Positions 1,760 to 16,760 of a stretch of DNA of 19,037 nucleotides are shown here, one piece after another. Below the pieces are notes generated by a model. It was not told the DNA's origin, made no database searches, and saw only the letters and a program-made list of their open reading frames with translations. Location of the stretch: the NCBI RefSeq assembly GCF_006345805.1, contig NW_021824288.1, positions 1 through 19,037 of the forward strand, in the 5' to 3' direction. Every line of letters begins with the position of its first letter. The first letter of the stretch is position 1. This DNA is from Octopus sinensis. Its lineage: Eukaryota. Position numbers and translations under genes: made by a program.

Positions 1760-1866
1760 TTACCTGTACTTTAGCGCCGAGTTTGATAATAATTGGACGT
1801 TAGAAGCCTATAGAGAAAGTGGAAACGTCGAAAAGTACGATATTCCTATGAAAGATCCATCTGGCA
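1760..1866 (+). CDS. Internal coding exon A of an unidentified gene (107 nt, phase 2 in, phase 1 out)
   Basis: Acceptor ttagtttcAG (to 1759) and donor GTAAGT (1867-1872). Open frame YLYFSAEFDNNWTLEAYRESGNVEKYDIPMKDPSG. The paralog at 16654-16760 keeps the same length, phase and splice sites. Confidence 0.7.
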
Positions 1867-2084
1867 GTAAGTAAAATATATCTTCTTACCTTGAATGCAA
1901 GTGATTGTATAATTCCCTCTGTGTGTATTTGTGTGTTTGTGTTTGCGTGCGCGCGAACACCGGTTGTTTTCAAAAAGCATTGTCTCATACATGAATACAT
2001 AATCCATAAATATTTTAGAGTGGTTGTATACTGTCAACTTAACGTGACAGTACTGTAAGGGAATTACACCACCGCTGTTTAGCA

Positions 2085-2110
2085 CTAGGAAGCATGTCGA
2101 TGCTTCCTAG
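2085..2110. other. Perfect 11-bp hairpin ctaggaagcat-gtcg-atgcttcctag
   Basis: Direct inspection. It lies 8 bp upstream of an (AGAT)n tract. Confidence 0.85.
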
Positions 2111-2118
2111 GGTTAAAC

Positions 2119-2126
2119 AGATAGAC

Positions 2127-2190
<64 letters not shown>
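2119..2190. repeat. (AGAT)n microsatellite
   Basis: Direct inspection. Confidence 0.95.
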
Positions 2191-2391
2191 TAATCTTTCT
2201 ATCCATCTCTTTCCATATTCTTCAAGTGGCGATTAGAATTCGTTTCGGAGGCGAGGCAAGTTAACGGTACTAATGAGCAAAAATAACTACGAAATATCGA
2301 TATCTGTTGTACACGTTCACTTTCGGAACAGTTTCGTTTCGCTTAGTTTTCAAGTATACAGTGTCTTTTAATATTATATCTCTTTAAATGG

Positions 2392-2638
2392 ATTTAGAGA
2401 GCTACTTCCCTTATATAAACCGAGCACAAATGCATTAAAAATGCGAAAAAAAGATGGTAAATTTTTCTTATCATCGTAGACTCATCGTAGACGCGCGCTA
2501 ATACCGAGAAGGGCTCGATATGAATCACGACTATAAGATACCCGCTTTTGGTTAAACTGCACCGCAAAATGTGGGAGTAGTTAGGAATCTAAATCGGAGG
2601 AGACAGACTCACACAACTTCAGTTTTATATATAAAGAT
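2392..2638 (+). mobile_element. Helitron/Helentron-like element, copy 2 (lacks the 5' end)
   Basis: High similarity to 1388-1628. Same 3' end ttttatatataaagat, followed by (TA)n. Confidence 0.65.
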
Positions 2639-2695
2639 ATATATATATATATATATATATATCTATATATATATATATATATATACATACATATT
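2639..2695. repeat. (TA)n microsatellite
   Basis: Direct inspection. Confidence 0.95.
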
Positions 2696-2838
2696 TAATA
2701 TAGATAGGTTGATAGATAGATAGCTAATACATAGATAAGGAGTGAGAGAGAGATATGTGTGTGGGTATTGAGTTATTTTAATAAATTTTTAACAAATCTA
2801 TCCTCCTTTCGTATTTTTCAATGGGCATGGCGTACTCG

Positions 2839-2895
<57 letters not shown>

Positions 2896-2922
2896 TAGGA
2901 TAGATAGATAGATAGATGGATT

Positions 2923-3003
<81 letters not shown>
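2839..3003. repeat. (AGAT)n microsatellite
   Basis: Direct inspection. It is the source of the IYLS repeats in ORFs 2798-3079 and 2818-3141. Confidence 0.95.
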
Positions 3004-3004
<1 letters not shown>

Positions 3005-13302: not shown

Positions 13303-14745
13303 TTGGAATATTCATAACTAGATAGATAGATATAACTTGATTTCTACTAGTATAGCACTGCTTTAAGGTAGATAACTAAGAGTTCTCACATTACAGTTAT
13401 CTTTATCTTTTTCCTTATATCTACATCAGTTTTCTGAGAACAGAGACAATGAATAGTACTTATTCGCTACTTAATTGAGGCTTTCTTAATTTCAAACTCA
13501 CAATTTTTAAATTCTTAATTTTAAATCCTAATTGTAATATTTAATTTTAATTCCTAACTTAATCTAATTTAAATAGCAAACTCTAATAAATTATAATTAG
13601 TTACTGTAGCCCCATAATTCTATTTCATAATTAAATAAATAAGGCTATTCCCTCGGTGATAATATGATTATCTTCATTAGATAGACAATCCCCCCTAACC
13701 CCTTGTAAAATGATCTTATAAGATTTGACCTGTAGTCGGTCAATGTATGAATAATACGACAACTCCTTAAGACAATAAAATGAATAAATTAAATAAGTAA
13801 ATTTTTAATGACTTTTTGATAAGATTATACTTAGATTTTCCTAATGTATTTTCTGGTGATTTTAGCATCTGACCCCTTAACCCCTGACTGTGTTATCTCT
13901 TTAGATTCTCTTTAAAAACTCATAGCTTATTTCAACAGCAATAAATTAACGGTTTACTGGTCAAAGATTAATAATATTCCCTCCAGTTCCTAGATGCCTG
14001 TTGATTAAAACCAGACTTACAGTCTACTCTCTGTAAATAACTAAACCCTCTTTTTTTCTTTTTTTTTTTCTTTTTCTTTTTTTTTCCCTCTTTTCCCTAT
14101 TTCTTTCTCTTTCTCTTTCTTCTTCTTCTTTTCTTCTTCTTATCTCTTTTTCCTTTTCCTCTTTTCTTTTCTCTTCTCTTTTAGTCCCCCCTTTCCCCCC
14201 CCCCTTTTGCTCCCTCCTCCATTATTTTCTCTCTTTTTCTTCTATTCCCTTCTCTATTCCTGGCCGATCTAGTAACCCTTCAACCTTAAGAGTTTAATAG
14301 CTGCAGCCTCTTGTGAATAGCAGTAATGTGATTAATATGCAAACACCTAATCATATAACAAGATTGGTACCTACCACCTCATTGTGTTCAACCATTGTAA
14401 AATTTATCGCCTGTGAATATGAAATTCATCTCCATTTCTCTGGAAATTTACATCTACACACATTGGAATCTGTGCATATATACAAAGGATTAATTCACCC
14501 TCTCTGTATGCTAATAACAATGGATAAATTTGTCTTCTGTGAGTATATAATCCCTCATCATATCTATGGAAATTCATATGGATTAGGTCACCTTCTCTGT
14601 GATGCTATCAAACTTTTTAAAATTCTGTGATAGACTATGCATCATCTTTAAAGAACTTTAATGAACTTTAGAAATCTGTTTAATTATCTACATTACTTCA
14701 TGAGTATAGCCTCAAACACTAGGATGTCTAGAGAACTTACATGTA

Positions 14746-14836
14746 TTTTAGCTGATGAGTACGGGACTCGTTTATATGCTGTAATCTTTGCAACTTTTAA
14801 TAAAACCTGTCCTTGTATGAAACGATCGTACTAAAA
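14746..14836 (+). ncRNA. Type I hammerhead ribozyme in the right PLE arm
   Basis: Stem I ttttag(14746-51)/ctaaaa(14831-36). CTGATGA 14752-58. Stem II gtacgggac/gtccttgtat with a ~41-nt loop. GAAA 14819-22. Palindromic stem III ACGATCGT. Predicted cleavage after GUA at 14830. Confidence 0.85.
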
Positions 14837-14889
14837 ACCTATCCATTCTTGTTGCTTCTTTCTCGCTATATATATATATATATATATAA

Positions 14890-15044
14890 TTATGGTTCAG
14901 CAAAAAAAAATTACTTTACCACACACCGAACTTTTAGAAATAGCAGCCAAAGAATTTAGCTATTTCTCCTAAGCTAAATTCTTTGGCTGCTGTTTCGAAA
15001 AATTCGGTGTGTGGTAAAGTAAAAATATTTTTCTGAACCCTAAT
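14890..15044. mobile_element. Fold-back MITE-like element (near-perfect ~72-bp inverted arms, 10-nt loop)
   Basis: ggttcag...ttactttaccacacaccgaa...agcagccaaagaatttagct-atttctccta-agctaaattctttggctgct...ttcggtgtgtggtaaagtaa...ctgaacc. Confidence 0.75.
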
Positions 15045-15154
15045 GATATAAAGTAATGTTAAAATATATCGTAAATGTCCTTTTACAATACTGAACACTG
15101 CTTGGTAAAATTATTAATTACTAATTAACTAATTATACCCTTATTATTATTGAC

Positions 15155-15158
<4 letters not shown>

Positions 15159-15202
<44 letters not shown>

Positions 15203-15222
15203 TATATATAATATATATATAT
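15159..15222. repeat. (TA)n microsatellite
   Basis: Direct inspection. Confidence 0.95.
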
Positions 15223-15234
15223 ATTTTCTTTAAC

Positions 15235-15633
15235 CTTTACTCTTTACTTGTTTCAGTCATTTGACCGCGGCCATGCTGGAGCACACCGCCTTTAGTCGAG
15301 CAAATCGACCCCGGGACTTATTCTCTGTAAGCCCAGTACTTATTCTATCGGTCTCTTTTCCTGAACCGCTAAGTGACGGGGACGTAAACACACCAACATC
15401 GGTTGTCAAGCAATGCTAGGGGGACAAACACAGACACACAAACATATGCACACGCACTTATATATATATATACATATATACGACAGGCTTCTTTCAGTTT
15501 CCGTCTACCAAATCCACTCACAAGGCATTGGTCGGCCCGGGGCTATAGCAGAAGACACTTGCCGAAGATGCCACGCAGTGGGACTGAACCCGGAACCATG
15601 TGGTTGGTTAGCAAGCTACTTACCACACAGCCA
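15235..15633 (-). mobile_element. Full-length tRNA-derived SINE with an internal CA/TA microsatellite
   Basis: Minus-strand head tggctgtgtgg (A box)...ggttcagtccc (B box), with a short tandem (AAAGAGT)-type tail. A second full copy lies at 17583-17967. Confidence 0.85.
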
Positions 15634-16230
15634 TATATATATGCGTATCCAAAGTTCATCACCGCCTCGCCGTGGCGGCGACACTGGCAACGGGTAGTGT
15701 CAGAGCTATGCCGTCAGGAACTTCGGTTTCTGGTAGGGCCACCCAAGGCGTATTGGTCTGACACCGAGTGGTATTAGGGCCACAACCCGGCAGACTGAGG
15801 TCAAAATGCATCCAAGAGGTTGACTTTATCAGATTTATCAAAATTCATCTCAGACATAAAGAAATTAAAACATATTTCACAGTCACACACGTCTCGTGTG
15901 TCTTTTGCGGTTCAGTGTATAGCAACACAAACCAACTCTTCATAATCACACACCAGAGAGCAGCGAAAACAGTTATCAGCACCGTTTCTCCGTAAATTTC
16001 CCGAAGAAGGATTCCTTGCTCCGAAATACTGAAATACTAGAGAAGAGTATAAACCACTGACTTGTATTATTAATATTTTGGTACAACTTGCATTGTTTGG
16101 GCTTTAAAGAAAAACTATTTAAAAGATTTATGTTTATCAGACAATGCTTCTTGAAAACCCACTGCTGCGAGCGCACACACATACACACAGGAACAAACAT
16201 ATATACACACATACATAGTATAATAATAAT

Positions 16231-16552
16231 AGGAGCACTCCGTCGGTTGCGACGATGAGGTTCCCAGCTGATACGATCAACGGAACAGCTTGCTCGTGAT
16301 ATTAACGTGCAAGTGGCTGAGCACTCCGCAGACACGTGTACCCTTAATGTAGTTCTCGGGGAGATTCAGCATGACACAGAGTGTGAAAAGGCTGGCCCAT
16401 TCAAATACAAGTACTACTCATTTTTGCCAGCTGAGTGGACTGGAGTAACATGAAATAAAGTGTCTTGCTCAAGGACACAACGCGCCGCCGGGAATTGAAC
16501 TCACGACCTTACGATCATGAGCCGAATGCTCCTAACCACTAGGCCACGCGCC
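16231..16552 (-). mobile_element. tRNA-derived SINE (different family) with (ATT)n tail
   Basis: Minus-strand head ggcgcgtggcctagtgg...gagttcaattccc, central gtccttgagcaagacact motif, tail at 16219-16230. It sits in the intron downstream of exon B and is absent from the paralogous intron of exon A. Confidence 0.85.
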
Positions 16553-16653
16553 TTCACACATACACACACACACAAACACACATGCACACACATATACACA
16601 TATAGGGTTATACAATTATTTGCATTGAAATCAAGAGGATATATTTTACTTAC

Positions 16654-16760
16654 AACCGCCATCATCTTCCTGAAAAATAACGTAATTTTCATTATTTCTA
16701 CTTTCTCTTTTCGCTATTATCCTATCCCCGTTAACAAACTCGATGAGGAAGTTCGGGTAA
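16654..16760 (-). CDS. Internal coding exon B, paralog of exon A (107 nt, phase 2 in, phase 1 out)
   Basis: Acceptor ttagtttcAG and donor GTAAGT. Open frame YPNFLIEFVNGDRIIAKRESRNNENYVIFQEDDGG. Colinear with exon A without gaps. Confidence 0.7.

Follow-up and report, generated by a model that had tools for sequence, protein, structure and literature searches.

Cephalopod genomes are known for their expansions of protocadherin, zinc-finger and GPCR genes. In other animals, families comparable to the one described here mark molecular arms races, be it in venom, in immunity or in sperm-egg and mate recognition. In snake venom three-finger toxin and PLA2 genes, exon evolution is accelerated, and an 'accelerated segment switch in exons' has been described (Doley et al. 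2008, PMC2474615). Here we analyse a 19,037-nt stretch of octopus DNA (contig NW_021824288.1, referred to as the window), for which an original prediction, made by reading the sequence, had proposed that two 107-nt segments, far more diverged than their own introns, belong to an unrecognised and rapidly diversifying gene family. Both segments are the fourth exon of members of an octopus multigene family, and in other members, too, this exon has diverged more than the introns. Diversifying selection on surface patches, together with recombination or gene conversion between paralogues, is the probable cause.

Exon 4 of two convergent genes and its flanks

The window carries the 3′ halves of two genes, A and B, in convergent (tail-to-tail) orientation, and the two segments (1760-1866 on the forward strand and 16654-16760 on the reverse strand) both correspond to exon 4. 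Their alignment is ungapped and contains 42 differences over 107 positions (60.7% identity), and all the counts made earlier on this pair were reproduced. Frame 2 is the only one open in both segments and yields the two peptides that had been quoted. In this frame the amino acid changes at 20 codons, 5 codons have silent differences and 10 are unchanged; the differences are evenly spread over the three codon positions (15/14/12). The upstream intron is identical at 117 of 131 positions with 2 additional gap columns (88-89%), and the downstream intron at 39 of its first 46 (85%) and at 70 of 81 over a longer homologous stretch. A distant non-coding block, located about 600 nt upstream of exon 4 (1037-1160 versus 17558-17434), reaches 89% identity, its first 51 nt being the same in both copies. 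Comparison of the exon (42/107) with the three pooled non-coding flanks (42/366) gave p = 6.5e-10 in a Fisher test, and p did not exceed 7e-5 with any single flank; the excess of exon over flank divergence in this pair is far beyond chance. A blastp search of open reading frames (ORFs) against each other within the window, for further diverged exon pairs, returned repeat-derived noise only.

A HMMER profile of both peptides matched P0001 (Octopus sinensis LOC118761643) with E = 1.4e-20, as well as P0003 (5e-7), P0004 (1e-5) and P0006 (8e-4). P0003 and another protein, P0009, are from O. bimaculoides, P0004 is from O. vulgaris and P0006 from O. sinensis. A word-index protein search had missed P0001 despite a 32-residue run identical to exon A, and the exhaustive HMMER search caught it; a word-index search that finds nothing with a short query is therefore not reliable. 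With a family profile, at least 25 predicted proteins were retrieved, every one from Octopus (O. sinensis, O. bimaculoides and O. vulgaris), and all 25 are named 'uncharacterized' or 'Apple domain-containing'. Their loci include LOC118761643, LOC106880400 and LOC106880398. As judged from these searches, the family is apparently restricted to Octopus. Profile homology and the shared exon order, splice sites and phases show that the two segments are coding exons and belong to two genes of a multigene family, as had been proposed. The family is indeed uncharacterised, but its members were already annotated as predicted proteins, so that 'unrecognised' holds only in part. Full-length members (e.g. 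P0007, P0011 and P0016) are about 250 amino acids (aa) long and show a hydrophobic N-terminal leader and a cysteine-rich PAN/apple-like region; their C-terminal region had no Pfam match. Conserved NGT and NST motifs are candidate sites of N-glycosylation. One model, P0010 (O. sinensis LOC118764386, 402 aa), has a single apple domain followed by two tandem C-terminal domains.

The exon limits first proposed required one correction. The segments are coding exons and the GTAAGT donor stands, whereas the real acceptor lies 6 bases upstream of the proposed cAG. In RefSeq models of the orthologue and of paralogues, the acceptor used is ttAG/TTTCAGTTACC (the slash marks the exon border): these models read ...FNKN/FSYP... 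and exon 3 ends with ...AAT AAG AA/GTATAA, which places the acceptor at the upstream position. The paralogue s6 (L004 8690-8704) carries tttcaA instead of tttcaG, a change that gives FN and not FS in the protein. The proposed AG is thereby destroyed and the upstream AG is intact, which supports the latter as the acceptor in use. Corrected exon 4 is 113 nt long in both genes (1754-1866 and 16654-16766), the 6 added bases being the same in the two copies (42/113 differences). The acceptor ttag/TTTCAG and the donor /GTAAGTAAAA are common to 11 exon-4 copies, one of them with GTGAGTAAAA, and gene B exon 4 matches the 10 other family copies in splice sites and phases.

Exons and introns in young paralogues

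Ten exon-4 copies were compared with their introns, the eleventh being that of L007. Four of the genes are young O. sinensis paralogues, sB (L001), sB2 (L003), s6 (L004) and s19 (L005), which provide six pairwise comparisons. Non-synonymous and synonymous rates (dN and dS) were obtained by the Nei-Gojobori 1986 method (NG86), that is, by pairwise counting only. In these four genes intron 3 is replaced, upstream of position -32, by an unrelated sequence that we call type 2 and which is 95-98% identical among them.

Between young paralogues, exon 4 differs by 20-25% and the upstream intron by 2-5%. For exon 4, dN was 0.25-0.35 and dS 0.05-0.20, with dN/dS of 1.5-5.2. The proportion of non-synonymous sites that differ (pN) was 0.21-0.27 in exon 4, against a flanking intron divergence (Ki) of 0.02-0.07, and 0.15-0.24 in exon 3, against 0.04-0.11. 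Exon 5 was intermediate, with pN about 0.1. In exon 2, pN was 0.04-0.15 and the corresponding synonymous proportion (pS) reached 0.49, which indicates purifying selection on this exon. When exons 3 and 4 were pooled, 18-24% of non-synonymous sites differed compared to 5-7% of positions in the surrounding introns; pN was thus 3-4 times the intron divergence and exceeded Ki in all six pairs (p = 1e-5 to 1e-9). The outpacing of introns by exons, noted at first in a single pair, therefore recurs family-wide, across six comparisons of four O. sinensis paralogues. Support for the diversifying selection proposed for the window pair comes from these younger paralogues. The window pair itself gave a dN/dS of 0.87 with dS = 0.62, on the side of 1 that the original prediction had named as speaking against it. 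Between A orthologues, pN/pS over exons 3 and 4 was 0.47 (window versus O. sinensis) and 1.18 (O. sinensis versus O. bimaculoides).

Stops and frameshifts were looked for in the exon-4 copies, and 11 of 11 are open, including that of L007, which is distinct again. The copies are 110 or 113 nt long, so that length varies by whole codons only, and each of the four young paralogues has an intact set of exons 2-5. Variability is patchy: the conserved cores FNGTGTNSTSWFQKDK, PHTVTFNANFSYP, EAKRESG and YEAMVISVILK are found between hypervariable stretches.

Among the four young paralogues, parsimony-informative sites back the same grouping around exon 2 (68:0:0) and around exon 5 (13:2:2), while exon 4 favours another grouping (7:1:2) and exon 3 is split (4:5:1). 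Unless convergence was strong, such conflicting trees along the gene show that paralogues have recombined or undergone gene conversion, and exchange of this kind may explain part of the exon-intron pattern. The intron upstream of exon 4 in the window (type 1) has conserved counterparts in O. sinensis A and in both O. bimaculoides genes, A and B. It carries no A-versus-B signal: all pairwise distances are 5-13/108, O. bimaculoides A and B are the least apart (5/108) and A orthologues of different species differ at 10-11/108. The similarity of the upstream intron is in part a matter of slow evolution or homogenisation. In the downstream intron and in the far block, however, the A and B lineages are distinct.

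Selection, exchange between paralogues and alternatives

We favour, with a probability of about 0.7, an explanation that combines diversifying selection on surface patches with recombination or gene conversion between paralogues. The genes would form a clustered birth-and-death family of predicted secreted proteins, in which selection would favour amino-acid diversity in exposed and putatively binding patches of the C-terminal domain. These short hypervariable patches, encoded by exon 3, exon 4 and the start of exon 5, diverge several-fold faster than the adjoining introns, and exon 2 and the cores of exons 3-5 are conserved across the family. Exchange between paralogues would probably keep introns and conserved cores alike and reshuffle the variable patches.

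Several observations weigh against this explanation. The dS of the window pair (0.62) is far above its intron divergence of about 0.15; this pair by itself cannot demonstrate positive selection and the dN/dS test is uninformative there. In the young pairs, pN/pS over exons 3 and 4 is 1.2-1.8 and individually significant in none (p = 0.06-0.44), and synonymous divergence is about twice the intron divergence (0.12-0.19 by NG86, 0.10-0.16 at codons with unchanged amino acid). This synonymous excess is not predicted by pure positive selection after recent duplication; it fits a homogenisation of introns, an import of diverged segments or an artefact of NG86. Moreover, exon A shows 4/107 changes between the window and O. 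sinensis, 1 of them non-synonymous, from which it follows that exon A is not evolving unusually fast at present. Gene A also seems to be without its last exon in this genome, as detailed below.

Concerted evolution alone is an unlikely account, though one to be taken seriously. The paralogues would then be old, their introns and cores homogenised, and the patches would have escaped conversion, either because selection keeps existing differences or because mismatches block conversion; no accelerated substitution would be involved. This would agree with a synonymous divergence above that of introns, in the window pair as in the young pairs, with the tree conflict along the gene and with an upstream intron devoid of A-versus-B signal, in which A and B of O. 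bimaculoides are closer than A orthologues are. It would also agree with the type 2 intron, which is so alike in four paralogues, and with the exon-2 introns of these genes, which form two groups that differ by 33%. However, conversion tracts would need to end repeatedly at the same sub-exon patches in many paralogues, and the downstream intron and the far block follow paralogue identity. In the youngest pairs, exon 4 dS is 0.05-0.09, close to the intron divergence, with dN of 0.28-0.35. A dS near the intron level and a dN 3-5 times higher argue for an excess of amino-acid change and not just for a greater age of the exons. Concerted evolution would, in addition, still need a selection that preserves diversity, and to this extent it overlaps with the combination of diversifying selection and exchange that we favour. 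An exon-targeted hypermutation, as formerly proposed for conopeptide genes, would raise the substitution rate of exons at synonymous and non-synonymous sites alike. The even distribution of window-pair differences over codon positions and the raised synonymous divergence could be read in this way, but we hold it to be very improbable: exon 2 of these genes varies less than the introns beside it, variable patches are interrupted within the same exons by conserved cores (for instance FNGTGTNSTSWFQKDK and EAKRESG), and from the window to O. sinensis orthologous exon A has diverged at the rate of introns.

Relaxed constraint, according to which the copies would be decaying pseudogenes with frames open by chance, is scarcely credible and is largely refuted by the data. 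Neutral decay cannot pass the intron rate, while divergence in the exons is 3-10 times that of the introns; the 11 exon-4 copies and the four sets of exons 2-5 are all open with length changes in frame only, exon 2 is clearly under purifying selection and splice sites are nearly invariant. These facts stand against the damaged exon 5 of gene A and its Pro-to-Leu change at a conserved position, an overall dN/dS near 1 and the truncation of several RefSeq models, all of which speak for such decay. It is barely conceivable that the repeated block belongs to a transposable element, whose variable interior would be the 'exon'. The window is rich in short interspersed elements (SINEs) and other repeats, the far block partly resembles repeats at 4654-4940, and the two copies are inverted relative to each other. 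Nevertheless, each copy found occupies the same place in a five-exon gene, between family exons 3 and 5, SINE and other insertions differ between copies (one has its own target-site duplication), and no transposase, terminal repeats or target-site duplication bounding the block were found. A transposon origin of the block, already considered in the original prediction, was rejected, all copies lying in a collinear family-gene context.

Gene layout, predicted fold and likeness to known systems

Exons 1-5 of the family were placed by tblastn and direct reading, the gene models being computational predictions. The window includes exons 3-5 of gene A, the last one damaged, and exons 4-5 of gene B, the earlier exons lying outside (Table 1). 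Positions 1-2190 are 96.7% identical to 13795-15993 of the O. sinensis contig L001, which makes the window the orthologous locus of a very close relative or a divergent haplotype. O. sinensis (L001) and O. bimaculoides (L002) likewise have an A-type and a B-type gene placed tail to tail; the A/B split is therefore older than those species and the window pair is no recent duplicate.

Exon 3 of gene A is bordered by the acceptor tttccag/ and the donor AA/GTATAA, as read directly, and its orthologue lies at L001 14336-14481. Gene A exon 4 differs by one amino acid from exon 4 of LOC118761643 (P0001) and encodes Leu at a position that is Pro in nearly all family members (YP.F). Intact gene A exon 5 of O. 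sinensis (L001 16634-16684) encodes NVQWRYPQLVFSVLLK followed by a stop. In the window, the G of its acceptor and one more base are absent, and the remainder is replaced by a (GATA)n microsatellite (2840-3005). The gene A copy may be a recent pseudogene, or its lesions may be assembly errors. Exon 5 of gene B is intact: it reads ttacag/AT CTC AGA ... AAG TAG, aligns to the O. sinensis B exon 5 (L001 23535-23488) and carries the C-terminal motif of the family. It is separated from exon 4 by an 8.2-kb intron. Gene B exon 3 was not found in the window, where only SINE arrays lie beyond 17558. The intron-3 conserved block is also present in intron 3 of O. sinensis paralogues and of O. bimaculoides B.

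No orthologue of gene B was found in O. sinensis among the copies compared (L001, L003, L004, L005 and L007). Window B differs from its positional counterpart in L001 at 36/104 positions of the exon, 16/62 of the downstream intron and 19/129 of the far block, and the copies of L003, L004, L005 and L007 are no nearer. As far as sequence comparison can tell, the B position is held by different paralogues in the window and in L001, an indication that genes have turned over or segments have been replaced between genomes as close as these.

Table 1. Family exons, gene A and gene B features, and repeats mentioned in the text (window positions unless a contig is named)
Feature	Position	Strand	Remarks
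Family exon 1			signal peptide and apple domain; outside the window in both genes
Family exon 2			encodes ...WQKVFEMT..SFKRSPIYLYWDKLPIEK; outside the window in both genes
Family exon 5			ends with ..SV.LK and stop; gene A damaged remnant, gene B 8434-8385
Gene A exon 3	527..672	+	146 nt, phase 0 start; encodes KEFRLEIGIGHIITFNGTGMNSTSWLHNEKILSNSYPNWKILKFTFNK; tblastn with P0001 and P0007
Gene A intron-3 conserved block	1037..1160	+	89% identical to 17558-17434
Repeat copy in gene A intron 3	1391..1634	+	88% direct repeat of 2393-2646; absent from gene B
Gene A intron 3, 3′ end (type 1)	1627..1753	+	89% identical to 16891-16767
Gene A exon 4	1754..1866	+	113 nt; encodes (N)FSYLYFSAEFDNNWTLEAYRESGNVEKYDIPMKDPSG
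Gene A intron 4, 5′ part homologous to gene B	1867..1996	+	1867-1949 and 1966-1996, 86% and 85% identical to 16653-16569 and 16158-16126
Gene A exon 5 remnant, apparently disrupted	2819..2845	+	aligned to intact O. sinensis exon 5, L001 16634-16684
Gene B exon 5, coding part	8385..8434	-	correct phase; encodes (Y)LRFTFELLRVSVTLK and stop
Inverted-repeat block in gene B intron 4	9042..14872		5.8 kb; arms 9042-11861 and 12056-14872; self-BLAST
Gene B intron-4 conserved block	15915..16046	-	84-95% at translated level in L001, L003, L004, L005
tRNA-like SINE in gene B intron 4	16232..16552	-	gap in window-to-L001 alignment
Gene B intron 4, 5′ part homologous to gene A	16569..16653	-	
Gene B exon 4	16654..16766	-	113 nt; encodes (N)FSYPNFLIEFVNGDRIIAKRESRNNENYVIFQEDDGG
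Gene B intron 3, 3′ end (type 1)	16767..16891	-	
tRNA-like SINE in gene B intron 3	17112..17434	-	8-bp target-site duplication TGCATCGG (17442-17435, 17119-17112)
Gene B intron-3 conserved block	17434..17558	-	counterpart of 1037-1160
Type 2 intron-3 sequence	L001 24562-24720; L003 30270-30430; L004 8516-8697; L005 19562-19743		

The direct repeat copy in gene A intron 3 breaks A/B collinearity. Neither gene A nor the O. sinensis B gene has the two SINEs of the gene B introns, and homology to gene A picks up after the intron-3 SINE at aactggtaattattt. The large inverted repeat in gene B intron 4 contains no long ORF; its arms match at 92% and lie about 195 nt apart. When six other Octopus loci were compared, none of them carried it, and it may have arisen by palindromic duplication or represent an element of the foldback type. 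A tandem SINE-like array (17789-19037) occupies the region where gene B exon 3 is expected, and similar sequence is found at 15459-15633; its units of about 190-250 bp are 85-93% identical and separated by (TA)n. Another region (4300-5101) holds clustered copies of a repeat some 110-330 bp long, in both direct and inverted orientation and with 77-85% identity; the conserved intron-3 block resembles this repeat in part (1079-1137 and 17458-17516). Searches of the window for tRNA genes and against Rfam gave no match.

Several RefSeq models of the family appear to be mis-annotated. The P0006 model ends in the conserved intron-4 block (L004 9039-9170), and the canonical exon 5 (..SYEVMVISVILK and stop) is located 8 kb downstream (L004 16830-16877). 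P0003/P0009 (L002 21814-21930) and P0013 run past the exon 4 donor and terminate with ..GSSK and ..GSK, and in P0018 the type 2 intron is translated as a terminal exon (...DKKIDEGTIDFVWDYI). The Octopus annotation errors exposed here are thus of two kinds, donor read-through into the intron and intronic blocks called terminal exons.

An AlphaFold2 model of P0007, the O. bimaculoides A orthologue, was obtained with a mean predicted local distance difference test score (pLDDT) of 80.7 and a predicted template modelling score (pTM) of 0.74. Its N-terminal domain superposes on apple/PAN modules with a root-mean-square deviation (rmsd) of 2.8-3.5 Å and a Foldseek probability of 0.99-1.0: 2j8j (factor XI A4, 3.4 Å), 4iua (HGF, 2.8 Å), 4dur (plasminogen, 2.9 Å) and 1hky (Eimeria PAN, 3.5 Å). 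Pfam scores were below the curated thresholds, with 13-19 bits for PAN_1 (cut-off 21.4) and 11-16 for PAN_4 (cut-off 27), so that membership of the PAN/apple superfamily is supported by the modelled fold and not by Pfam. The C-terminal domain modelled alone (P0022; exons 2-5, about 135 aa) is predicted to be a beta-sandwich (pLDDT 87.4, pTM 0.80), for which Foldseek returned no significant match in the PDB. A fibrinogen-like assignment was rejected as too weak, the best match, L-ficolin, giving a TM-score of 0.45-0.48, an rmsd of 7.7-8.1 Å and E > 0.2, and so was a TLDc assignment (TM-score about 0.4). In the P0007 model exon 4 covers residues 190-226, which form two strands (194-199 and 204-209) joined by a turn, then a loop and a short strand. 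The two patches of exon 4 that vary map to the hairpin tip and to the last strand and loop, a location from which we infer that they may form an exposed binding surface.

Searches of the literature with the LOC identifiers, for an octopus apple-domain family and in one recent octopus selection preprint gave no mention of the family, nor did this literature contain a description of a secreted, lineage-restricted family with patchwise hypervariable exons. By analogy with the arms-race families of other animals, it could provide an entry point to an unexplored octopus recognition system, built on a fold without solved relative. Near-identical introns, very different exon patches and tree conflict also make it a compact natural case in which diversifying selection can be weighed against gene conversion. 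A more speculative and rather doubtful extension is that these genes encode, in the germline and in octopus only, a set of diversified recognition molecules, acting as ligands in immunity, gamete recognition or chemotactile sensing and built on a PAN/apple module and a beta-sandwich without solved relative. Their binding patches would be diversified by positive selection and short-tract exchange between clustered paralogues, and their gene content would turn over even between sister species, as a cephalopod counterpart of FREPs or Sp185/333.

Like the conotoxin superfamilies of cone snails, the octopus genes form a molluscan multigene family of (here predicted) secreted proteins in which the signal region is conserved and another part hypervariable. 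The variable exon evolves faster than its flanking introns in the two cases, with synonymous divergence raised there as well, the conotoxin side of the comparison being established knowledge. The octopus proteins, unlike conotoxins, are predicted to be folded proteins of about 250 aa, with a PAN/apple module and a beta-sandwich, and not short disulphide-rich peptides. They have no propeptide/mature-toxin architecture and vary in patches of exons 3-5 and not in one mature-toxin exon. With snake toxin genes they share introns more conserved than exons and short exon segments that seem to be swapped between paralogues, although fold, lineage and gene structure are unrelated and the octopus segment switching, which appears as tree conflict along the gene, is deduced from four paralogues only. 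Gastropod FREPs and sea-urchin Sp185/333 resemble the octopus family in being lineage-restricted, clustered and secreted (as predicted for the latter), with hypervariable regions and recombination among members; they differ in domain architecture, the octopus C-terminal domain being only weakly fibrinogen-like. Alike as these systems are in their mode of evolution, the octopus protein itself is related to none of the conotoxins, snake toxins, FREPs or Sp185/333 proteins. The N-terminal domain model superposes, with the deviations given above, on modules of the kind found in PAN/apple adhesins and lectins (apicomplexan MIC4 and SML-2, and the N-domains of factor XI, plasminogen and HGF), and several family members are labelled 'Apple domain-containing' in UniProt. 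In contrast to these proteins, the octopus family would combine a single apple module with an unrelated beta-sandwich, and its hypervariability lies outside the apple domain.

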